From positions 282,439 to 303,897 of the forward strand of contig NW_003314337.1 in NCBI RefSeq assembly GCF_000143415.4: a stretch of DNA of 21,459 bases. Reading direction: 5' to 3'. The notes under the pieces are model-generated. The model was not told the origin of the DNA. It did not search any database and saw nothing but the letters and a program-made list of their open reading frames with translations. Below, piece after piece: positions 5,044 to 21,459 of the stretch (its first letter is position 1; each line of letters opens with the position of its first letter). Origin of the DNA: Selaginella moellendorffii. Its lineage: Eukaryota > Plantae > Lycopodiophyta. A program made the position numbers and the translations under genes.

Positions 5044-6780
5044 TGTGAGACACAAAATCCCTAGGCCCCAAAGTGGAGCCGGAAAGGGTGCCACGTGGTA
5101 GTGGCCGAAGCAAAAGCCCAAACGAGTGTAACACGTTTGGACTAAAAGCTCTGACTTGGAAGGTCGAGAGCGGGAGTGGAACTCCCAACAAAGTGCTCAA
5201 GGAGCGAGCACGAAGCGAGCAATAAGCAAGGCTCCAAAAAGGGACCCAAAAAGGACCAACACACGACATGTGGAAGTGTCCGAGATGGAGTCCGAGGCGG
5301 ACCCTAGTTGGAGTCCGAGATGGACCCGAAGTGGAGTCCGATATGGAGTCCAAAGTGGAGTCCGAGATGGACCCGAAGTGGAGTCCAATATGGAGTCCGA
5401 AGTGGAGTCCGAGATGGAGTCCGATATGGAGTCCGAGATGGACCCGAAGTGGAGTCCGAGATGGAGTCCGATATGGAGTCTGAGATGGACCCGAAGTGGA
5501 GTCCGAGATGGACCCGAGATGGAGTCCGAGATGGAGTCCGAGATGGACCCGAGATGGAGTCTGAGATGGAGTCCGAGGTGGACCGAGACGGAGTCTGAGA
5601 TGGAGTCCGAGATGGAGTCCGAGAAGGATCCGAGATGGAGTCCGAGGTCGAGACTGAGACCGGGACCGAGACCGAGACCAAGATTGGGACCGGGACCGAG
5701 ACTGAGACCGAGGCCAAGGCTGAGACCAAGCCCGAGCCCGAGTCCGAGTCCGAGTCCGAGTCCGAGTCCGAGTTCGAGTCTGAGAGGGTGAAAGCCCAAA
5801 GCGTTCGTCTCCCAGACCCTGGGGGGTTTGGTGAGCTCCAAAAGTATAGTAAGGGGGAGGACTGCAGTGGAGCCAGTTTGGCCAGGAAAGGCCAGTTTGG
5901 CCCAAGAAGGCCAGACCCAGTGTTGGGTGATGAACTGACCACTGGGAAGTCCAAGACTAGAGTGAATACGGACTGACAAGCGGGGTAGCTTGGTGAAGTG
6001 TTCAAGAGCCGGCTCTAGTTCCCCCGGGAGATCGACTGGCCGATGCTCCCAGTCCAAGTGTGGGTGGCACTACCTACTTGGATACCAGGCGTGGCTCAAC
6101 GGAACCTCGCTCTAAGCCCATGGCTAGAGCACCTAAAGGCAAAAGGTGGGGAAAGTACCCAGGTGGCTCGCGTAAGGCCACGGTGTTCCGAAATGTTGTC
6201 CCAAAGGCCCAGACTGTGGAAAGGAAGAGGAGCAGTCCTCTGGGGTAGTGATCAAAGACACAGTCATGTGGTGAGGAAGTCCCAGAGGACCGTGGGACTT
6301 AGTGGTCGGGCTTGTGGGCCTCAATCTAGTGGCAGTGTTGGCAAACACGGCCAGGGGCAGAAAGGGACTTGGTAGGAACTGACAAAGGGACTTTGGGGAA
6401 GGCAATTCCCCAGGTCATTGGGCATCCTAAGGATGCTAAGGAGTGGATCTAGGATGACCACTCGTGGATACATGGCCCAGTCTTGGAGAGACGAGGTGGT
6501 GATGCAAGTGGTGTTGGACCACTAGTGCAGCAAAGGTGAATGGGCATGGCCTTAGCGTAATGGGCCAAGATGTCAATGGTACCTTTGGGTGTCGGTCTTG
6601 GGACCGGACACGTGGATCACTTGGACCAGGTGCAAGTGTTGAGTGGCATGGATGCCATTCTTGGGGCTAGCAAGTCCCAAGTCCTGAATTGGACTGATGG
6701 AGGTTGCGAATGAGACTCCTCCAAGTGGTCGGAGGTGTGGTTAAGTGACTAAAGTAGAATGGAAAAATTAGTCGCCTATA
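5044..6780 (+). repeat. 3' LTR (1737 bp) of the large element
   Basis: TGTGAG...CCTATA (CA mutated to TA); colinear with 668-2466; flanks GGAGT and GTTCA differ, so it is not a solo LTR. Confidence 0.9.
5280..5784 (+). repeat. Compound CCGAG-core tandem array inside the second LTR
   Basis: 31 units at 5280-5641 (22 x 12, 8 x 11, 1 x 10), then CCGAGA/CCGAGT hexamers. Confidence 0.97.
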
Positions 6781-7458
6781 GTTCACATACTTCGCAATCA
6801 TCCCTTTAAATGTTCAAACGAGCCGTTCCACTAGACCGTTTAATTGTGGATGATAAGCACTCGTGAAAGTGTGGCATATCCCCAACTGAGACGTCAAAAC
6901 ATGAAATACTTCAGCCATAAATGTGGGACCATTATCTAAAAGAATCTGCTCTGGATAAAAATGCTGGAACACCACTCGATTGAGGAAGAAGTATCTAACA
7001 GCAGTTGCAAAGGCATTAGCAAGAGCACCAACTTCCACCCAACAAGTCAAGTAGTTAAAAGCAATAATAACATACTCATTGCTAGCAGTCGACTGTGGAA
7101 AAGGTCCCATAAAATCAAATGCCACCAACTCAAATGGACGGGAAATTGCAATTGACTCCAACTGTCCTTCCGCAGCACGAGGGGGAGTATTACGAGCTTG
7201 GCACCAAATGCAGCTACGCACATACCAGATAATATCACGTGGCATCTTCGGCTAATAGAAAGACCTATACAGCTTCTCGGTTACACGACGATGTACTATA
7301 TGCCCACCTAGAACAGGAAAATCATGGTAGGCATGGAGAAACCACAGAATAACGATAGAAGGCACCACCAGCCATAAATGATCATCAGGATTTGCCCCCA
7401 CAAAATAAAGAAGGCCGTCTTCAAGGCAATATAGAGAATGTAAATGCCGAAAAGGCAA
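6781..7458 (-). pseudogene. Integrase remnant (zinc-binding HHCC and catalytic core)
   Basis: HAYHDFPVLGGH, YVRSCIWCQ, RPFELVAFDFMGPFP, QILLDNGPTF, TSAYHPQLNGLVER; split across frames. Confidence 0.95.
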
Positions 7459-7649
7459 GTAATCAACAAGTGATGTAGGATTCTCAAACCCATCTCGAAG
7501 CCTTTGAATCCACGGCTCAATCTTTTAAACCTTAGGAACCTCATCAAGAGAAGGTAGATCTTACTCTGCACCTTGTGGATACTAAATGTCAAGTACAACA
7601 ACTGCCGAAGGCACAGAATCCTCGTTGATAGCACTTTGAGATCCACAAA

Positions 7650-8560
7650 CACCCGCTACTAATCCGGAGACTAGATGAAAGATGATGTTGATGACTTCAG
7701 CAATGCTTGCAACAATGTAGTGCGATCAGAAAGATGATCCATAAACCGACCGAGATACTACCTTACCCAAGAAGCGCTGCACATCATTCACACCCTTCGG
7801 AGTAAGGAACTTTAGAACAGCCACAAGTTTGTCAGGATCAACTTGCAAACCCTCACGAGAAATATGATACCCAAGATAAATTGTGTCCTTGGACCCAAAC
7901 ACACACTTTGACCACTTCAACTTTAAACCAATGTCACGTAGTTGATCCAACACTTTACAAATATCACGAATGTGCTTCTCCCACATCCCTCCAAGTGGAT
8001 CAAGACATCATCAATAAAGTCAGTAGTCACCTCTAGCATATGGCAAAGAACTTCATCCATCATCTACTAGAAAGTTGTTGGAGCATTGTTCAAACCAAAC
8101 AGCATCACCAAGAACTCGTACAAACCAAATAATGTACGAAAAATAGTCTTAGGAATATCTTCTTCAGCCATCAGTACTTGCCAGTACCCAAAAGCAAGTT
8201 CCAGCTTGGTGAACCAACGACTTCGCCCCAGACGATCTAGGAGATCAACAGTGTGAGGAAGAGGGTACACATCTGGGATCGTCACTTCGTTTAATGGACA
8301 ATAATCGATGCAAAAATGAATAATCCCATCGGGCTTCGTCACAAGATGAGGTTCACATGCCCAAGGACTCCGCAACTTCCGAATAACACCCTTCTCTAAC
8401 ATCTCCTTGATGTTTGCACGTAAAATCTTGATCTCCTTGGGTGACCGACGACAAACAGGAACCTTGATTGAACGAGCATCCCCAGTTAGAATCAGATGAC
8501 GTGTGGCAATCTTGGCCCCAGACGATAGGTCAAATTCAAAGAGATCAGAATACTCCTTCA
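7650..8560 (-). pseudogene. Reverse transcriptase remnant (RNase H deleted downstream)
   Basis: EMLEKGVIR..SPW, FCIDYCPLN, DVYPLP, GYWQV, LFGLNNAPTTF, DFIDDVLI, GLKLKWSKCVF, YLGYHIS. Confidence 0.95.
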
Positions 8561-8759
8561 TGAGCCAGTCAACTGCTGCAACACAAAGATCGTCGGAGGG
8601 ATCGGAAAAGGGAAGCGCAGAACAAGATGGAAACACAGGAGGAAATAGTGGGGGAACAAAAGTAATGGAAGCAGAGGTAGAAGTAGAGGGACGAAGAGGT
8701 ACGGATGTGAGAGGAATGGAGGAAAGATAAGGGAGTATGAGATAAGGGGGAGAAGCCTC

Positions 8760-9083
8760 AAAGTCACACTTGGCATGATTGCGCTGCAACCAATCCATAC
8801 CAAGAATGAGGTCAAAAGCTTGACTCGGCACCACCTACAATGACTGCAACTCAAGCTCGAGATCGCCCACATGCACAACCAGGTCTGCCTCATCCCATGC
8901 ACATGCATGTGTACGGCCATTGTCATAAAGAATGAAAACTGGTTCCACTGCACGATGCAAGTCTAGACGGCAACCTGTGGCAACAGGTCGAGCAATAGAA
9001 AATAAATTTGAACCTGTATCAACCAACACAGAGAGAATAATAGGAGATCTTTTGATATAAAAATGAGCTTGGAAAGTAAACAC
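8760..9083 (-). pseudogene. Aspartic protease remnant
   Basis: SVLVDTGSN active-site motif and FDLILGMDWL motif; interrupted. Confidence 0.92.
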
Positions 9084-9140
9084 TGGATGAACCGATGCCG
9101 AGTGAACCCCTTGATGATACTCTCGAAAGAAAGATGAAGG

Positions 9141-10074
9141 CTATTATTCGCGCGACTCCTCATTTCCTAGATACATCTTGGGGTCCAAACCTTCCACTGC
9201 AGCAGCACCAATGGGACGTTGCTAATGCAAGATCTCTACCTAGGAAATGGGGGTCTCCATTCGGAAAACACTGACAATGCCGATAAGTATGACCAACTTC
9301 ATCACACGCCTAGTAATGAACATCATAGCCACGACTACATCCTCGCCCTTGTCCTTGGACTCGAGCAGTAGTAGCATCAACCTCCATTGGAACAGGACCA
9401 TCACCCATAAGAAGTGGAGTTGAAGGACATGCAGTGAGAAGTGGAAGAGGCGACATCTCATAACATTGTGCCAAGCAAAGAGCATCGTCAAGGGTGGTGG
9501 GAGTAAGTGCATGCATAAGCCCGACAAGATCTTGACGAAGTACTGGCCACAACATTCCGAGCTTGATCCGCTCCGACATATTTGGCTCCACACGAAGCAA
9601 AAGACTTCGGAAACGAATGCCAAATTGCATCACCGACTCAGATGGCCCTTGGCAAAGACGATGCAATTGTTGGAAGGCATCATCACAGTCATTAGCATGT
9701 CCGAAAGTGTGTTTGAAGACGTCTGGGAGAACACTCCAATCCCCACGAGTGGCTACGCTCAAACCATTATACCACTGCAGCGCCGTCCCTTGGAGACACA
9801 TAGGAAACTCACACAAATGCCGAGCATCATCCCAAGAATGATATGTGGCAATCACTATGAAGTGATCGAACCAATGGTACACATCATCCCTAGGTTTTTT
9901 GCGAAAGAACTCCAGCCGAACGCGAGGATTGGCACCAAGAGCAGAAAGAGTTGGACCACGTGTCATAAACGCCGCCATCAATTGAGTTTGGTTGTTCAAT
10001 TGCAAGTGTATAGCATCAAGCAATTGTACCAACTGTTGCTCCAGAGTCAAAGGAGGAGATTGCTGATCTGCCAT
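9141..10074 (-). pseudogene. gag: Gag remnant
   Basis: LQGTALQWY, LCQGPSESV..F..RF, GPVPMEVDA, degenerate zinc knuckle (CDEVGHTYRHC) after a premature stop. Confidence 0.92.
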
Positions 10075-10933: not shown

Positions 10934-11108
10934 TATGAGATGCAAGTGTACAGCTACAATGCCGTATACTAATATTAGCATAATGGGATTTTAGTAGCGA
11001 TTGGATTAGTTTCAATCCAGATCATTTGCTCCTGTTATAAACTAGGGTTTTCGGGTTAATTGATATGCATAATTTTTTTGTTCCCTTTCCATATTCCATG
11101 CACTCACA
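10934..11108 (+). repeat. 5' LTR of gypsy copy B
   Basis: TATGAG (TG mutated to TA)...CACTCACA; TATAAA at 11036-11041; followed by PBS TGGTAGATATGAAGGG (11110-11125). Confidence 0.9.
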
Positions 11109-11341
11109 TTGGTAGATATGAAGGGCACTTTTCATTGTCCTTGATGAGTGTTTGGATTTAGGATTTTGGTTTAAATCTAGCTTTTGCATTGTCTAGATTT
11201 AATTTTTTTTTCATTTCCTTTCTTTTGTTCTTTCTTTTAAGATTTTGGTTTAAATTTAGCTTTTCGATTGTCTAGATCTCCCTTTCCTTCTAGTTTTTTT
11301 CTCATTTCTCTTCTTTTCTTTTTTCCTTTTCATTCATCTTC

Positions 11342-12278
11342 ATGGCAGAGTAGTAGTCTCTTCCTCCTTTGACTCTAGAGAAAATAGTTGGTGCAATTGC
11401 TTGATGCTATGCGATTGCAATTGAATAACCAAATTTAATTGATGGTGGCATTCATGACACGTGGTACAGCTCCTCCTGCTCTTGGTGCCAATCCTCGCAT
11501 TCAGCCAGAATTCTTTCGTGGGAATCCTAGGGATAATGTGTATCATTGGTTGAATCACTTCACGGTGATTACCATATATCATTTTTGGGATAATGCTTGA
11601 CACTTGCATGAGTTTCCCATGTGTCTCCAAAGGATGGTGTTGCAATGGTACAATGGTTTGAGCACATCCACTTATGGGCATTAGAGTATTCTCCCGAACA
11701 TCTTTAAACACACATTTAGACATACCAATGATTATGATGATGCCTTCCAACAATTGCATCGTCTTCGTTAAGGGCCATTTGAGTCGGTGATGCAATTTGG
11801 CATCTATTTCCAAAGCTTTTTGCTTCGTGTGGAGCCAAATATGTCAGAGCGGATCAAACTAAGAATATTATGACCAGCACTTCATCAAGATTTTGTTGGA
11901 CTTGTGTTTACACTTGCTCTAGCCACCCTTGATGATGCTCTTCGCTTAGCACAATATTATGAGACATCCTCTTCCACTTTTCGCTGCACATCATTTTGCT
12001 CCACTTCTTGTGGGTGATGGTCTTGTTTTAATAGAAGTTGATGCTACTGCTGCTTGAGTCCAATGACAAGGGCAAGACATGGTCGTAATTGTGATGTTTA
12101 TTGTTGGGTATGTGATGATGTTGGTCACACTTATCAGTGTTGTCAACATTTTTCAGATTGGTGACCTCCATTTCTAGGGTGGAGACTTTACCATCAACAA
12201 TATCCTATTGGTGCTGATACAGTGGAAGGTCTAGACACAAAGATGTATTTGGGAAACAAAGAGTCATGCAAGTAATAG
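11342..12278 (+). pseudogene. gag: Gag remnant with CCHC zinc knuckle
   Basis: Colinear with copy A gag; CWVCDDVGHTYQCC (Cx2Cx4Hx4C) at 12102-12143; many stops. Confidence 0.9.
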
Positions 12279-12319
12279 GACTTTGAGTGAATAAGTCAAT
12301 GACCCCTCTACCTTTCTAT

Positions 12320-15150
12320 ATTGTAGTGGTTGACTGGCTCATGAAAGAGTATGCCAATCTCTTTGAATGTGATATATTGCCTAGGGCCAAGATTGCCACA
12401 TGTCATCCAATTCCAACTGGGGATGTTTGTCTAATCAAGGTTTCTATTTGTTGTCAGTCATCTAAAGAGATCAAGATTTTATGTGCAAATGTCAATGAGG
12501 TGTTGGAAAAAGGTGTTATTCAAAAGTCATAGAATCCTTGGACATATGAACCACATCTTGTGATGAAGCCTGATGGGAGTATTCATTTCTACATTAACTA
12601 TCGTCCATTAAACAAAGTGATAATCCCATGTGTACCCTCTTCCTCACACTACTGATCTCTTGGATCATCTGAGGAGAAGTCGTTGATTCACCAAACTAGA
12701 TCTTGCTTCTGGATATTGGTAAGTACTAATAGTTGAAGAAGATATTTTTAAGACTACTTTTTGTACACCGTTTGGTTTATACGAGTTCTTGGTGATGCCG
12801 TTTGGTTTGAATAATGCCCTAGCAACTTTCCAGTGGATGATGGACAAAGTTCTTTGTGATATGTCGGAAGTGACTACTGACTTCATTGATGATGTCTTGA
12901 TCCACTCGAAAGGGGCATGGGAGGAACACGTCCGTGATGTTTGTAAAGTGTTGGATCAGCTACAAAAAGTTGGTTTAAAGTTGAAGTAGTTAAAGTGCGT
13001 GTTTGGGTCTAAGGACACAACTTATTTTGGGTATTATATTTCTTGTGAGGGTTTGCAAGTTAATCCTGATAAACTTATGGCTATTTTAAAGTTCTCTATT
13101 CCGAAGTGTGTGAATAATGTGCAGTGCTTTCTAGGCAAGGTGCAGTATCTTGGACATTTTGTGGATCATCTTTTTGATTGCACTGCACCATTACTAGCGT
13201 TGGTAAAGTCATCAAAGTCATCTTTCATCTAGTCTTTAGATTATGAGCAGGCGTTCATGGATTTTAAAGAATTATTAACGATTCCTCCGGTTTTAGCATA
13301 TCTTGACTACACTCAACCTTTTATTTTGTGCATGGATGTTTTTGATATTGGTCTTGGAGGTGTGTTGATGCAAGAGAGCCTGAGTGTGTTTGGTCAGCAC
13401 CATCCCATTGTGTATATAAACTATATATTATAACTAACGAAGGTGAACTACTCCATGATAGAGAAGGAGTGTTTAGTAATAGTATAGGGTTTCGAGAAAC
13501 TTCATGCATATCTACATGTTTCTCAGATGTTACTAGAAGGTGATCATATTGCCATTACTTCATTATTGAAGTGGGCTTTGAAGCTTTAGATATATGATTT
13601 TGATGTTATTCATCGCCTAGGGAGTTTTATGGTTGATGCTAATGCCCTTTCTCGAGCTCCTCTTCCTTCTTTACTCTTTTATCATGTTTCTGATGAGCTT
13701 GTTGTTCTAGCATCTGTGGATTTTTTCGACAAGGATTTTATGCAGTTGGTAGTTGCTATATTTGATGTTCAGTATCCACAAGGTATAGAGCAAAATCTAT
13801 TTTCTCTTGATGAGGTTCGTGAGGCTCAAAAGATTGAGCCATGAATTTGAAGGCTTTAAGATGAGTTTGAGAATCCTACATCACTTGTTAATGACTGTAG
13901 TACACCTTATCTCTCTCCCCTTAAGCCAACTGGAAAAGGGGCAATTGCTTGATGAGAGAGCCCTTAGTGGCTATTTTATCCCCATTTATCTCCCAAGGTT
14001 CCAAGGATCCATAGTGATAGTATATCCAAATCTCATCCTATGATCACATGTGCTACAATGACTTACCATTCCGGCATTTACATTCTCAATATCACTTTAA
14101 AGATGGCCTTCTTTATTTTGTGAAGAGGGTTCCTAATGATTCTTTATGGTTAGTGGTGCCTTCCATCTTTATTCTGTGATTTCTCCATGCCTACCATGAT
14201 TCTCTTGTTTTATGCGAGCATATGGGACATTGTTGTGTGACCGAGAAACTGTGCAGATGTTTTTATTGGCTAGAGAGGCAACGTAATATTATTCAGTATG
14301 TGCATAACTCCGTTTGGTGCCAAACTCATAATACTCCCCTTCGTGCTACAAAAGGACAGTTGAAGTCAATTGTAATTTCCCATTCGTTTGAGTTGGTGTT
14401 GTTTGATCTTTTAAGACCTTTTCCATGATTAACTGCTGACAATGAATATATTATTATTACTTCTAACTATTTGACTCGTTAGGTGGAAGTTGGTGTTTTT
14501 GCTAGTGCCTTTGCAACTACTATTGGATACTTACTTCTCAATCAAGTGGTGTTCCAGCATTCTTGTCTAGAGCAGATTCTTTCAAATAATGGTCTTACAT
14601 TTATGGCTGAGGCATTTCATATTTTGATGTCTCAGTATGATTGCGAAATACATAAACTTTTAGCATTCGGATTGGGATGGTTATTTGCCGTTTCTTTGGT
14701 ATGCATATGTCACAAAGGTGCAAATTTTTGTTAGTGCTTCACCATATAAATTCTTATATGGTCATGATCCAATATTATCAATGGAGTTGGGTTTACCTTC
14801 ATGGTTACTATAAGCTACTAATGCTAGGTCATGGGATCAGTATTTAATGAGCATTCTTCCATTTGTTCGAGCAGAGTCTGTTAAACACTTAGGCCGCATA
14901 CAAGTGGGACAACAATGGCGTACTCCCATCATTATCCAGCTATGAAGTACAAAGTGGATTACTTGGTGTTAGTTTGTTTTTCCTATCTTACGGTACATAG
15001 TTTATCTAAGGGGCTTTTTGCTTAGTGGAAAGGATCGTATCGGGTGTTGTGGCAAGTTAGACCACAAGTTTATGAGGTTCAATATGGCCGATCCTCTAGA
15101 AATTGTGCATGTGCAACGATTGAAATGCTTCATACAAAGGGATCAAGAAT
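12320..15150 (+). pseudogene. pol: Pol remnant: RT, RNase H, integrase with GPY/F; protease deleted
   Basis: VMPFGLNNALATFQ, DFIDDVLIHS, RNase H (FILCMDVFDIGLGGVLMQ; NYSMIEKECL; DANALSR), integrase (FELVLFDLLRPFP), WKGSYRVL..VHVQRLK; no chromodomain seen. Confidence 0.93.
13896..14057 (-). mobile_element. 162-bp solo LTR inserted in pol of copy B
   Basis: TGTAGTACA...TGTGCTACA termini (8/9 inverted repeat); TSD ATGAC at 13891-13895 and 14058-14062; copy A shows the empty site (about 7460-7465). Strand is inferred from similarity to the Cassandra LTR. Confidence 0.9.
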
Positions 15151-15244
15151 AGTTAATACCACTTAGAGATCTACCGATGCCTCCTTTTGATGTTCCTCTA
15201 GATCCCAGCCTATCTACAAGAGAATTCTGATGGTCTAATTATTT

Positions 15245-15260
15245 GGAGAGGAGGGGATGA
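15245..15260 (+). promoter_or_regulatory. Polypurine tract of copy B
   Basis: GGAGAGGAGGGGATGA immediately before the 3' LTR. Confidence 0.9.
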
Positions 15261-15436
15261 TGTGAGGTCCAAATGTACAGTTACAATGCCGTATACTAAT
15301 ATTAGTGTAATGGGATTTTAGTAACCATTGGATTGGTTTTAATCCAGACCAGTCGCTCTTGTATATAAATTAAGGTTTTTGGGCTAATTAATATGCATAT
15401 TTTTTGTATTCCCCTTCCATATTCCATGCATTCATT
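15261..15436 (+). repeat. 3' LTR of gypsy copy B
   Basis: TGTGAGG start; aligns end to end with 10934-11108; right end uncertain by 2 bp. Confidence 0.9.
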
Positions 15437-17165: not shown

Positions 17166-17312
17166 TCCATATTTAGTCAGTTTTCGTGATTGTCTTATAT
17201 TTTTTAGGATTGAGGTGAAAACCCAAAGCATGTGTTCTTCACACGGGATGGGGGGGAGGGGTTTCAAATGTATAGTAAAATAGTGGATAGGTTGAGCATA
17301 GTTGATTGGCTC

Positions 17313-17616
17313 CTATTAGTCTTGGCATTGGCATGCTAAAAGTTCTAGGATTTTTCCAGGCAACTCCATGCTCCTATCCTTACACTCTTAGGGTTGTATA
17401 CCCAAGAGTCATTCTATGCTTTACTTCTTTTGTTGGCTTCATGTTTAAGAGTTTGGCTCCATCTTTTTGTTTAGTGGCTCAAGGCTTTGAAACTTGTGTT
17501 CCTCTTCACTACCCTTAGATATATGGTATATGGCATGTGAAGGGTTAAGGTTTTGTGCAATGGTTATTTTATGGTAAACCACTATAAGGTAAAGGGTGAA
17601 AACTACATGCATTATA
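17313..17616 (+). repeat. Old ~300-bp dispersed repeat, copy 1 (possible LTR relic)
   Basis: Colinear blocks shared with 19859-20144: GTCTTG..ATTGG, TCTAGGATT, ATTCTATG, GCTCAAG, TACCCTT, TGGTTATTTTAT.GTAAA, GGTAAAG.GTGAAAAC. Confidence 0.7.
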
Positions 17617-17640
17617 ACAGTCTATTTTTTAATTGCTATA

Positions 17641-18019
17641 ACATATATATATATATACATATATACATACATATATACATACATATATACATACATATAT
17701 ATATACATATATATATACATACATATATATATACATATATGTATGTATATATGTATATGTATATGTATACATATATGTATGTATATATGTATGTATATAT
17801 GTATGTATATATGTATATATGTATGTATATATATATGTATGTATATATATGTATATATGTATGTATATATGTATATATATATATGTATGTATGTATGTAT
17901 ATATGTATGTATATATGTATGTATATATGTATGTATGTATATATGTATGTATATATGTATGTATGTATATATGTATGTATATATATATGTGTATGTATGT
18001 ATGTATATATATATGTATG

Positions 18020-18053
<34 letters not shown>

Positions 18054-18054
18054 T
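17641..18054. repeat. Compound (AT)n/(ATAC)n/(ATGT)n microsatellite
   Basis: Read directly; ATAC-type up to about 17737, ATGT-type afterwards. Confidence 0.98.
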
Positions 18055-18524
18055 TACCTCTCTTTTTTACCTTTTACCCTTTCCCAATATTTTATTATTT
18101 TTCAGCCTAAGCTACCTTCTTCTGTTCCTAGTGTTTACTCCTTATTTACAGTGTTTCCTTCTTTTAGCATATTGATCATTTATAACTCTTATGATTCTCA
18201 TTCTCAGTCTAGTGTTTTTTGTCCTCCTCATTCAAATCTAGATGTTGAGAATATATGTGATGTTGAGAGTCTTGCTTTTGTTTTGTTAGTACAGTCTTTG
18301 ATCAGTTCTAATATTGAGTATTTTCTTGTTGGCCCTTTTAGATATTGTTTTTTATTATCACGACAGTAAAAGATTGGTATTATTGAACCCTTTATTAGTC
18401 CCTCTTGTTCAAGTGTTAGTAAATTGGACTTAGCATCTATATTGGCCATATGAGGGGGTTCCAAATATATAGTAAGAATAGTGGGTATGTTAGGCATGGC
18501 TGACCAACCTAAGATATAATTTAG

Positions 18525-19133
18525 TGTAAACAACCAAAGAGAACGACTTGAGAAACGATCCATGGGGTTCAAATATAGAGGGAAAGGGCCCATGAACAAG
18601 AGTGCACCCCCTTTTCCAATCGATTAAGGGTCTTGGGATATTTGGGTTAAGCGTCCTTGGGTTTGAATAGTGTTGGGCTGGGTGACCTCCCGGAAGTCCA
18701 AATTCAAGAGCTTACATTTGGTATCGAAGCTTACATTTGGTATCAGAGCGGTCTCGGGTCCGACTCTGTTGATTGGCTAGGGGAATCACACCACATGTTG
18801 ATTGACATCTGGCTGGTCCAGTTTGCTCCCACTGGGCTCGACCCGAGGGGTAGGGTGTCAAGAGAGCGGGGCTCTCGAGAGAGCTGCGGCTCTCAGCTTC
18901 CGTTCATGAGGGCGTGAACTTGCAAGGAAGCGTGGTGGATTGTAAGCAACCAAAGAGAACGACTTGAGAAACGATCCATGGGGTTCAAATATAGAGGGAA
19001 AGGGCCCATGAACAAGAGTGCACCCCCTTTTCCAATCGGTTAAAGGTCTTGGGATATTTGGATTAAGCGTCCTTGGGTTTGAATAGTACTGGGCTGGGTG
19101 ACCTCCTGGGAAGTCTAAACTTAGGAGCTTACA
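18525..19133 (+). mobile_element. Cassandra TRIM (non-autonomous LTR retrotransposon with 5S rRNA-derived LTR segment), complete
   Basis: LTRs 18525-18716 and 18941-19133 (TGTAA...TTACA); PBS TGGTATCAGAGC (tRNA-iMet) at 18738-18749; PPT before 18941; TSD TTTAG on both sides; no coding capacity. Confidence 0.96.
18646..18699 (+). promoter_or_regulatory. 5S rRNA-derived Pol III internal promoter segment (A box, IE, C box) in the Cassandra LTR; further copies at 19062-19115 (+), 19216-19270 (-), 19600-19654 (-)
   Basis: Consensus GTTAAGCGTCCTTGGGTTTGAATAGTACTGGGCTGGGTGACCTCCCGGGAAGTCC matches the 3' half of plant 5S rRNA. Confidence 0.92.
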
Positions 19134-19198: not shown

Positions 19199-19776
19199 TG
19201 TAAGCTCTTGAGTTTGGACTTCCCGGGAAGTCACCCAGCCCAGTACCATTCAAACCCAAGGACGCTAACCCTNNNNNNNNNNNNNNNNNNNNNNNNNNNN
19301 NNNNNNNNNNNNNNNNNNNNNNNNNNNNNNNNNNNNNNNNNNNNNNNNNNNNNNNNNNNNNNNNNNNNNNNNTTACAATCCACCATGCTTCCCTGCAAGT
19401 TCACGCCCTCGTGAACGGAAGCTGAGAGCCGCAGCTCTCCCGAGAGCCCCGCTCTCTTGACACCCTACCCCTCGGGTCGAGCCCAGTGGGAGCAAACTAG
19501 ACCAGCCAGATGTCAATCAACATGTGGTGTGATTCCCTTAGCCAACCAACAGAGTCGGACCTGAGACCTCTCTGATACCAAATGTAAGCTCCTGAGTTTG
19601 GACTTCCCGGGAGGTCACCCAGCCCAGTACTATTCAAACCCAAGGACGCTTAACCCCAAATATCCCAAAACCCTTAACCGATTGGAAAAGGGGGTGCACT
19701 CTTGTTCATGGGCCCTTTCCCTCTATATTTGAACCCCATGGATCGTCTCTTAAGTCATTCCCTTTGGTTGCTTACA
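19199..19776 (-). mobile_element. Cassandra TRIM, second copy, inverted
   Basis: 5' LTR 19583-19776; PBS (TCTGATACCA on +) ending at 19580; internal 19378-19582; 3' LTR 19199-19377 spanning an N gap; TSD CATAC at 19194-19198 and 19777-19781. Confidence 0.95.
19273..19372. other. Assembly gap (100 N) inside a Cassandra LTR; about 115 bp expected from the sister LTR
   Basis: N run; both flanks match the LTR and the TSDs match across the gap. Confidence 0.95.
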
Positions 19777-19858: not shown

Positions 19859-20144
19859 TGTTGGTCTTGATATTGGATGTTGAATGCTCTAGGATTGTTT
19901 TAATATCACTTTGTGCTTTTGTACCTTTGCTCATTAGGTTCAATGCTCAAAAGTTATTCTATGTTCTAATCACTTCACTCTTTAGTTATATGCTTGGAAA
20001 TTTAGCTTTACATCTTCCTTTAGCCCTAAAGCTCAAGTTTCGCTCCATTACCCTTGGCTTACATGTCCAGGGGTTACGTTCCATTTTGTGGTTATTTTAT
20101 AGTAAATCAGTATAGGGTAAAGAGTGAAAACCATATGTGCTACA
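19859..20144 (+). repeat. Old ~290-bp dispersed repeat, copy 2 (ends TGTGCTACA, LTR-like)
   Basis: Colinear with 17313-17616; similarity stops at TACA. Confidence 0.7.
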
Positions 20145-20796
20145 ATCACTTTTGCCAAAATTTTAGGTTAAGTGCATATCCCCACTTGTGAATGCTTGTA
20201 AAAGCTTTTATTTTACCATTGATATTGAGGAATTTATGTGTTCTTTTCAGAATGTAGACGTTTTTATTAATTTTCTAATCTAAAGTGTTGAGTTGTCAAT
20301 TAAGAAGGTTGAGTAATGTGAATCTTTTGCTTATATTATGGTGGCCAAAGTATTTTATAACAAGAAGTTCTATGTTTTCCAATATTTAAGCATATGTTTT
20401 TATTTTTTTCCCCATTTATGCATTGACAGCTACTGAAACATCCTATTATAATGCTTCTTTATTCACTTTTTATTTTTCCATAATTTTTCTTCCTCAATTT
20501 TTTTCACTTTCTCTTTTTTACTTTGAAGCTTCAAACTTTTTTTTCTTTAGAGGAGGGGCTAGAGGGGATGGACAAGAGTCTAGCTCCAATGATGGAGTGA
20601 GGACAAACAAATATAATAGTGGAGTGAGGACAAATAACATGGATTCTGAAATAAGGATAAGTATAGTAAGCCAAAGGGAACATTCTACCCTAATATAATA
20701 AAGTTTAACAGATGCAATAGTGGAATGAGGTTGAATATAGATAGTGGAATGAAGATAAGCATAGTCAATTTGAATGAAGCCAATACTTTAGAATGT

Positions 20797-21459
20797 TTTT
20801 CTTTTTCGAGGGAATAAGAAGAATATTAAGGATGAATGGAATGATTTTGACCTCCCATATGTAGTGTTGGATGAGGATGATAGTTATAAATTTAAATTAA
20901 TATAGGTATTAAATTTTAACCAAAAGGAAGATGCAAAAGTAAGTTTTATTTATGGTCATAAGTTTGAGTTAATAGTGGTCTTAGAGGATTGTCGATAGGA
21001 AGACTTAAAAATGGGATATATTATTTGTGGTAATGGTGTTTTATGGATTATAATGAATTTCAAAGTTTTTTGTTTTGGTTCAAAATTATAGCTTTAAGGT
21101 TGGTTAGAGCATTGGCAATTACATATAGAGTTGCAATTAATTTATCAAAATTCCTTAGCTAATTGATGTTGATTGTGGTTTTGTTTTTTCAAAGGGAATA
21201 AAAAGGATATTGAGGATGAATGGAATGATTTTGACCTCTTATATATATGGTGCTAGATGAGGATGAAAATTGTAAATCTAAGTTAATATAGTTTAAAATT
21301 TTGATTGAAGGGAAGATGTAAAGGTAAGTTTTGTTTAAATCTCAAAAAATCATCGACAGGAAGACTTAAAGATGAGGGAGGTTAAAGCTTTGGTAGCTAC
21401 ACCCGGAGTTATCATTAGTTTGCCAAGATTCCCTAGCTAACTGATGCTTGTGCCATGAC
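20797..21459 (+). repeat. Diverged tandem duplication, period about 384 bp (second unit has internal deletions and runs to the window end)
   Basis: GGATGAATGGAATGATTTTGACCTC at 20830 and 21214; shared GATGAGGATGA, GGAAGATG..GTAAGTTTT, AGGAAGACTTAAA, ATTCC.TAGCTAA.TGATG. Confidence 0.9.

Follow-up and report, generated by a model that had tools for sequence, protein, structure and literature searches.

Is a 162-bp long terminal repeat (LTR) in the genome of Selaginella moellendorffii a relative of the LTR of Cassandra retrotransposons, and if so, how did it come to be without their 5S-derived promoter module? The repeat stands alone at positions 13,896 to 14,057 of a 21,459-nucleotide stretch (the window; contig NW_003314337.1, 282,439 to 303,897 of assembly GCF_000143415.4) that also holds two Cassandra elements, and a first-pass annotation of the window had read it as a 5S-less relative of Cassandra. 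As a feature of the genome, the interval is an ordinary solo LTR. The explanation that we favour, with moderate confidence, is that it derives from a family that probably belongs to the miniature terminal-repeat retrotransposons (TRIMs) and carries an old LTR module that is shared with Cassandra. Coordinates of all features are collected in Table 1.

The solo LTR has exact ends, a perfect target-site duplication (TSD) and an empty site. On the plus strand it reads TGTAGTAC...GTGCTACA, with TGTAG from the first base and CTACA to the last, and both copies of the 5-bp TSD flank it directly; the bounds, TG..CA ends and TSD given by the first-pass annotation are correct to the base, ATGAC on both sides. 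The insertion lies antisense to the pol gene of an older Ty3/gypsy-type host element, 3' of its RNase H match, and the sequence downstream of that match looks integrase-like by eye and has no Pfam match. The window holds an inverted paralogue of the host element, and its reverse-complemented sequence (7320-7800), aligned to 13100-14200, runs through without interruption. It has a single GATTAC where the copy bearing the solo LTR has AATGAC, the element and then ATGAC. Because the paralogue reads through in this way, its site is the empty target. An inverted repeat in which 6885-7463 pairs with 14058-14636 starts exactly one base past the element. Public contigs from three runs (X1, X2 and X3) contain the exact skip of 167 bases (162 + 5), from 13889 to 14057, in 10, 4 and 5 cases, respectively. 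Further contigs have the skip between 13890 and 14058; these contigs come from other host-element copies. Per run, 35-49 contigs arrive at 14058 from element-free host sequence. As is expected of a solo LTR, the TG..CA termini bear short terminal inverted repeats, the TSD measures 5 bp and the empty site is precise. The TSD and the empty sites show integration: a full element inserted antisense into the decayed pol of the host, creating the 5-bp duplication, and recombination between its two LTRs would presumably have reduced it to one.

Other copies indicate an abundant, independently mobile short-LTR retrotransposon that is probably a TRIM. Contigs of four runs, uninformative on copy number, were aligned to 13600-14400 at 80% likeness. 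Homology breaks exactly before 13896 in 47-64 contigs in each of X1 to X3 and exactly behind 14057 in 64-69 contigs in X1 and X2. Consensus agreement of the flanks at the element edges is low (0.39-0.45), and the flanks are therefore many and different. Among the positions listed, the majority base differs from the window inside the element only at 13991, where 97% of the depth is C, and a contig of the fourth run (X4), which carries a second organism label, covers 13904-14057 with 6 differences (96% alike). These many sharp-edged copies, the TSD and the empty sites back the independent mobility claimed in the first-pass annotation.

Loose contig ends at the two edges give the layout of the family. 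A subset of those before 13894/13896 reads ...GCCATTTGCTCTGATACCA, the reverse complement of TGGTATCAGAGCAAATGGC..., which is a primer-binding site (PBS) for initiator methionine tRNA (tRNA-iMet), and loose ends on this side read as the reverse complement of TGGTATCAGAGCAAATGGCACAGGTTCGAT. In the noisier X1 and X2 consensus the PBS string is present and decayed by transitions. Behind 14057 the loose ends, those of X4 included, read CTCACCCCCCTTT, the reverse complement of AAAGGGGGGTGAG, a polypurine tract (PPT). Since PBS-side ends precede 13896 and PPT-side ends follow 14057, the LTR reads on the minus strand, as the first-pass annotation had it for the Cassandra match. The family is laid out as LTR, 2 bases, iMet PBS, internal part, PPT and LTR, both junctions being known as loose-end consensus at the two edges and not from one full-length copy. 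The iMet PBS (TGGTATCAGAGC), for which the first-pass annotation had proposed to search, thus exists 2 bases past the LTR end in other copies; the solo copy itself has none. Eight bases after the family PBS comes CAGGTTCGAT (contig junction at 13894-13896), which looks like complementarity to the T-arm or, equally, like a B-box. The GGTTCGAT motif that follows the PBS, outside the LTR, may most simply be extended complementarity to the T-arm of initiator tRNA-iMet. With the PBS and PPT seen in other copies, the family would replicate like any LTR element, presumably with borrowed proteins.

The same combination of traits is found in generic plant TRIMs (Gao et al., 2016, PMC4717578), which have LTRs of 100-250 bp, an iMet PBS, a PPT and a 5-bp TSD, and which likewise occur in high copy number, often as solo LTRs and nested in other elements. 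The LTR length of 162 bp, from which we take the TRIM label, falls within the TRIM range of about 100-250 bp. Searches beyond these copies were empty: neither the LTR-end plus PBS pattern nor the 25-base core described below has a match in metagenome contigs, the core has none in viral contigs, and a 48-amino acid open frame through the LTR finds no word-sharing candidate among predicted proteins. The 18-mer that follows the family PBS does not occur in the window, both Cassandra internal regions included, nor does the junction of the family PPT with the LTR start.

The solo LTR contains no 5S or other RNA polymerase III (Pol III) gene module. Rfam cmscan reports neither 5S nor tRNA in 13850-14100 at E<=10, and ARAGORN finds no tRNA in the element. 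When as many as 3 mismatches are allowed, box A[18]box C matches only the Cassandra LTRs at 18645, 19061 and 19613 and nothing in 13896-14057; box C by itself, with 2 allowed, likewise finds no match in that interval. The lack of 5S stated by the first-pass annotation is borne out by these searches, and since the 5S module is the defining feature, the solo LTR is not itself a Cassandra. A hidden Pol III module was rejected: plus-strand strings that by eye resemble an A-box (about 13966-13975) and a B-box (about 13997-14010) have no counterpart in the ARAGORN or Rfam (E<=10) output. A 5S remnant in the 3' tail is not supported, as the best local match there, to Cassandra box A at 9 of 13 positions, is not significant (p 0.9).

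The likeness to Cassandra is centred on a core and extends to its left. The core, CCCCTTTTCCAGTTGGCTTAAGGGG in LTR sense, is an imperfect palindrome, and its match to 19671-19693 in Cassandra element 2, reported by the first-pass annotation for 13918-13941, holds at 21 of 24 columns. On its own this match has an E of 0.03 in the window, like unrelated matches at 11390 and 3765. The weaker colinear blocks that had been noted beyond it grow on local alignment into 61 matches over 93 columns, joining positions 57-139 of the solo LTR, in LTR sense, to positions 16-106 of the Cassandra LTR, and identity is 66-68% over 77-93 columns with several gaps. The Smith-Waterman score is 45-47. In the shuffle comparison that had been suggested as a check, 2000 dinucleotide shuffles on both strands scored 21.7 +/- 3.2; none reached the observed score under two of four scoring schemes, and the other two gave p 0.0025 and 0.004. 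Natural sequence gives a similar picture: 192 comparisons of non-overlapping segments of the window, on both strands, have a mean of 19.4 (standard deviation 3.5) and a maximum of 34, from which a Gumbel fit yields p 2-4e-5 for each comparison and an expectation of 0.004-0.008 over the whole window. Cassandra controls, reversed or on the opposite strand, score 16-19. In blastn at 1/-1 the solo LTR and Cassandra are reciprocal best non-self matches (E 0.009-0.014 in the 21-kb window, the next at E 0.17-2), and they match in the same orientation relative to the PBS.

These results bear on a rival explanation, in which the solo LTR belongs to an unrelated ordinary short-LTR element and owes its likeness to chance and to generic promoter-type motifs (a G-run, a TATA-like box and a C/T-G/A palindrome). 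We consider it unlikely. Against it, none of the 2000 shuffles under two schemes and none of the 192 natural comparisons attains the score of the extended alignment, which leads the natural ones by 11-13 units, and the match is reciprocal, colinear and co-oriented with the PBS. A relation of the solo LTR to the host-element LTRs was rejected, since one host LTR gives a score of 32 and its 86%-identical partner 17, a drop that marks the host-LTR match as noise-like. The Cassandra match, by comparison, persists in all Cassandra copies.

Several observations nevertheless speak for chance or against the favoured explanation. The alignment is short, gapped and 66% identical, was noticed post hoc and has a window-wide E of about 0.01. 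Its persistence across Cassandra copies amounts to one comparison, because the three LTR copies are 94-97% alike. Left of the core alone, the colinear block GAAC..CTTG.GA..GAT..ATGGGG.T.AAATA reaches p 0.017-0.07, which is suggestive, and right (3') of the core alone there is no similarity (p 0.9). At their 5' ends the two LTRs are unrelated, over 55 bases in the solo LTR and 15 in the Cassandra LTR. The shared block consists in part of a G-run and a TATA-like motif, and loosely similar motifs stand at 17255-17312, at 18455-18512 and in a large LTR near 1520; since these lie in other repeats of the window, some of the signal may reflect promoter context of a generic kind. Most plant LTR elements have an iMet PBS and TG..CA ends, so these features are not diagnostic. 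The core does not qualify as a functional hairpin, a candidate we rejected, as it folds at -5 to -10 kcal/mol, no better than shuffles (z -0.2 to -1.4). The TRIM assignment follows LTR size, with no full-length copy available as sequence. Finally, the match falls short of the family-level criteria of E<1e-5 over 50 bp, at which TRIM families have been grouped (Gao et al., 2016), and of LTR identity >70% within a plant family (Maiwald et al., 2024, PMC10853983). Taken together, the alignment statistics make a distant LTR kinship with Cassandra likely to be real. Of the shared ancestry originally proposed, the above-chance, PBS-co-oriented match to the pre-5S part stands; the match is short and weak and lies below family criteria.

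The similarity ends at the 5S border. In the sense of the Cassandra LTR, the motif CCCCTTTTCCAATCGGTTAAGG occupies 84-106 and the Rfam 5S alignment begins at 104. The shared alignment spans nearly the whole pre-5S part; it overlaps the Rfam 5S alignment by 2 bases and ends 15 bases short of box A. In the solo LTR the core occupies 117-141 of 162 positions and leaves 21 bases, in agreement with the roughly 20 bp first estimated. Beyond the core, 87 bases follow in Cassandra and 21-23 in the solo LTR; the difference of about 65 approaches the size of the 5S core unit, roughly 70 bp, that is common to all Cassandras (Maiwald et al., 2024). A TATA-like motif falls in the shared block, at 47-53 of the Cassandra LTR and 78-87 of the solo LTR, where it reads AAAATAG (about 13971-13980). 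Of the idea of a 5S-less Cassandra relative, the absence of 5S is retained; a clean layout of Cassandra minus 5S is not, as nothing aligns 3' of the core.

This layout invites the reading that a Cassandra LTR lost its 5S part by deletion and was re-amplified with a promoter of the RNA polymerase II (Pol II) type. Both the size deficit, about 65 bases, and the stop of the similarity at the border with 5S fit such a loss, which is one of the options considered for 5S-less elements (Maiwald et al., 2024). A simple deletion should, however, keep the 3' flank of the module alignable, and this flank does not align. The 66% identity and the different 5' ends, PPT and internal start speak for an old split rather than a recent derivative, and loss of the promoter would be disadvantageous according to Maiwald et al. 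(2024). We therefore hold 5S loss to be improbable.

A further rival assigns the 162-bp LTR to an autonomous gag-pol element that mobilises Cassandra, the shared block reflecting a helper-parasite relation. Cassandra has an identical PBS and 2-base spacer, LTR sequence can be common to TRIMs and their autonomous relatives (Gao et al., 2016), and a coding element with short (172-bp) LTRs, the host Ty3/gypsy element, is present in the window. Reported LTR identities between TRIMs and their helpers are 79-98% (Gao et al., 2016), as opposed to 66% here, Kojima (2024, PMC10886601) argues that long stretches of LTR should not be common to a Pol III TRIM and a Pol II helper, and no coding sequence could be linked to the 162-bp LTR. 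We rate a helper LTR as very improbable.

Under the favoured explanation of a TRIM-like solo LTR with a shared module, 83 bases in the middle of that LTR would be distantly homologous to nearly all of the pre-5S Cassandra LTR. One old LTR module would thus occur in two non-autonomous families, through common descent or through exchange by template switching, with Cassandra carrying the 5S module in addition. We lean towards a sister lineage or module exchange over a recent loss of 5S. The shared block is too short to tell which family came first, and one solo copy is insufficient to choose between origins. A more specific version, in which the family is a surviving TRIM lineage from before the capture of 5S and the 5S acceptor site lies immediately 3' of the CCCCTTTTCC..AAGGGG core, appears rather doubtful.

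Comparison with Cassandra itself shows features on both sides. The short LTR, the TGTA..TACA ends and the 5-bp TSD are alike (Kalendar et al., 2020, PMC7215508; Maiwald et al., 2024). Further likenesses are the tRNA-iMet PBS 2 bases past the LTR, which is not specific to Cassandra, and the pre-5S part of the LTR, about 90 bases of which can be aligned with the orientation conserved. The family also has a G-rich PPT of the GGGGGTGAG type, as do rice and panicoid Cassandras; G-rich PPTs are common. Unlike Cassandra, the 162-bp family has no 5S-derived box A/box C; its LTR is 162 bp long as against 192-194 bp, and identity in the shared block is 66%. It also departs from the Cassandras of the window in its 5' 55 bases, 3' tail, PPT and internal start, all of which are unrelated: the 18 bases past the family PBS differ from local Cassandra, as does the PPT, with ...GGAAGCGTGGTGGAT in the local Cassandra PPT region and GGGGGGTGAG in the 162-bp family.

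The nearest published parallel is found in Asteraceae-Carduoideae, where 5S-less Cassandra-like TRIMs have been described (Maiwald et al., 2024). These also are short-LTR elements that coexist with Cassandra, show partial kinship with it and raise the question of progenitor versus loss, both origins being considered for them. They too have a TATA-like motif in place of the Pol III boxes, the TATA box lying 48 nt from the LTR start. The Carduoideae elements share the internal region with Cassandra and differ in their LTRs, whereas in the 162-bp family it is the LTR that has the shared part, and the start of the internal region differs. The two cases concern different host plants, and the kinship seen here is much weaker and comes from one solo copy. 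A second parallel is offered by Helenus and Ajax ('TRIMp3'; Kojima, 2024), in which a SINE-like (short interspersed element-like) Pol III module in a TRIM LTR predicts module-free relatives; unlike them, the 162-bp LTR has no module derived from a Pol III gene. Pol III TRIMs have been proposed to arise from SINE insertion into an ancestral TRIM LTR, and no helper is known for Cassandra (Kojima, 2024). Given these two studies, a 5S-less relative is as a concept already known.

Table 1. Features of the window that bear on the solo LTR and its comparison with Cassandra (positions of the 21,459-nucleotide stretch).
Feature	Position	Strand	Basis
Solo LTR, 162 bp, TGTAG..CTACA termini, without 5S/tRNA module	13896..14057	sense on minus strand	sequence, empty paralogous site, contig edges
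TSD, left copy, ATGAC	13891..13895	not applicable	sequence, paralogue comparison
TSD, right copy, ATGAC	14058..14062	not applicable	sequence, paralogue comparison, 167-base contig skips
Empty (uninserted) target site in inverted paralogue of host Ty3/gypsy element	7459..7463	-	paralogue alignment
Core motif (sense), imperfect palindrome	13917..13941	-	21/24 to Cassandra motif abutting 5S part
Block alignable to Cassandra LTR 16-106, 61 matches/93 columns	13919..14001	-	local alignment
Cassandra element 1, complete	18525..19133	+	LTRs 18525-18716 and 18941-19133; PBS 18738-18749; TSD TTTAG
Cassandra element 2	19199..19776	-	5' LTR 19583-19776; PBS 19569-19580; partial 3' LTR from 19199; TSD CATAC
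Host, old Ty3/gypsy-type element, decayed pol	10936..15435	+	LTR repeats, Pfam matches
Host LTRs, about 172 bp, 86% alike, TG..CA ends	10936-11107 and 15263-15435	+	direct repeats
RVT_1	12789-12989	+	Pfam
RT_RNaseH_2	13257-13433	+	Pfam

The two Cassandra elements of the window are both complete and lie tail to tail with 65 bases between them, each with its own 5-bp TSD; element 2 is broken by a 100-N assembly gap at 19274-19373. Their LTRs measure 192-194 bp, against 162 bp for the solo LTR. Rfam 5S_rRNA is matched at gathering score at 19044-19130 in element 1, and the Kalendar search pattern, box A[18]box C, is found in three LTRs with 2-3 mismatches. Box C reads GGGCTGGGTGAC(C/T) in all Cassandra LTRs of the window (18675-18687, 19091-19103, 19229-19241 and 19613-19625), with C where the published RRRATRGGTRACY pattern has A; the window itself holds no 5S gene. 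Element 1 has a tandem duplication at 18710-18749, where the LTR end meets the PBS: two copies of GCTTACATTTGGTATC stand about 19 bases from each other, and the first PBS is truncated, leaving the second alone intact.

The host Ty3/gypsy element has unusually short LTRs (about 172 bases) and a purine-rich run ahead of its 3' LTR; its PBS region is decayed (TTGGTAGATATG) and its TSD is poorly kept. Its internal sequence takes part in a large inverted duplication, 6885-10037 and 11383-14636, whose arms are 81-84% alike and represent two old copies of the same family in opposite orientation. Copy A has a deletion of about 460 bases across the RNase H region, and copy B has no loss relative to copy A. 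The reverse transcriptase (RT) open reading frame of the paralogous copy matches only plant and metagenome Ty3/gypsy RT proteins, at up to 54% identity.

Further repeats occupy other parts of the window. A large-LTR element has its LTRs at 668 to about 1960 and 5044 to about 6260, which hold tandem arrays of 11-12-base units (about 840-1500 and 5245-5820), and a hairpin and GGGTGGTGGAG tract before its 3' LTR resemble the segment before the Cassandra 3' LTR. A motif of about 60 bases (GGGGTTyCAAATrTATAGTAA..AATAGTGG..) is repeated 1.2 kb apart at 17255-17312 and 18455-18512; the second copy lies just 5' of Cassandra element 1 and is loosely like the TATA context of the Cassandra LTR and of the large LTR near 1520. 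A direct repeat of about 76-90 bases, 75% alike and spaced by 2528 (17534-17625 and 20062-20150), brackets both Cassandras and a compound microsatellite of about 415 bases at 17640-18055, which is composed of (AT)n/(ATGT)n/(ATAC)n and switches strand sense near 17740. At 20796-20916 and 21180-21302 there is a tandem duplication of about 385 bases, AT-rich, 77-84% alike and exon-intron-like in appearance.

Where the 5S promoter of Cassandra came from is an open question, namely whether it was acquired once or several times and from what element (Kojima, 2024; Maiwald et al., 2024). The kinship described here is moderately supported and is a lead, not a result. The only published 5S-less relatives (Maiwald et al., 2024) share the internal region with Cassandra and not the LTR, so that what would be new, if true, is a kinship at the level of the LTR that ends at the 5S border. 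If the family did predate the capture, it and Cassandra would show, at LTR level, the states before and after the origin of Cassandra. More generally, if the kinship is true, the junction of capture or loss would become directly examinable, and the LTR kinship, with the shared PBS, would point to a common helper.

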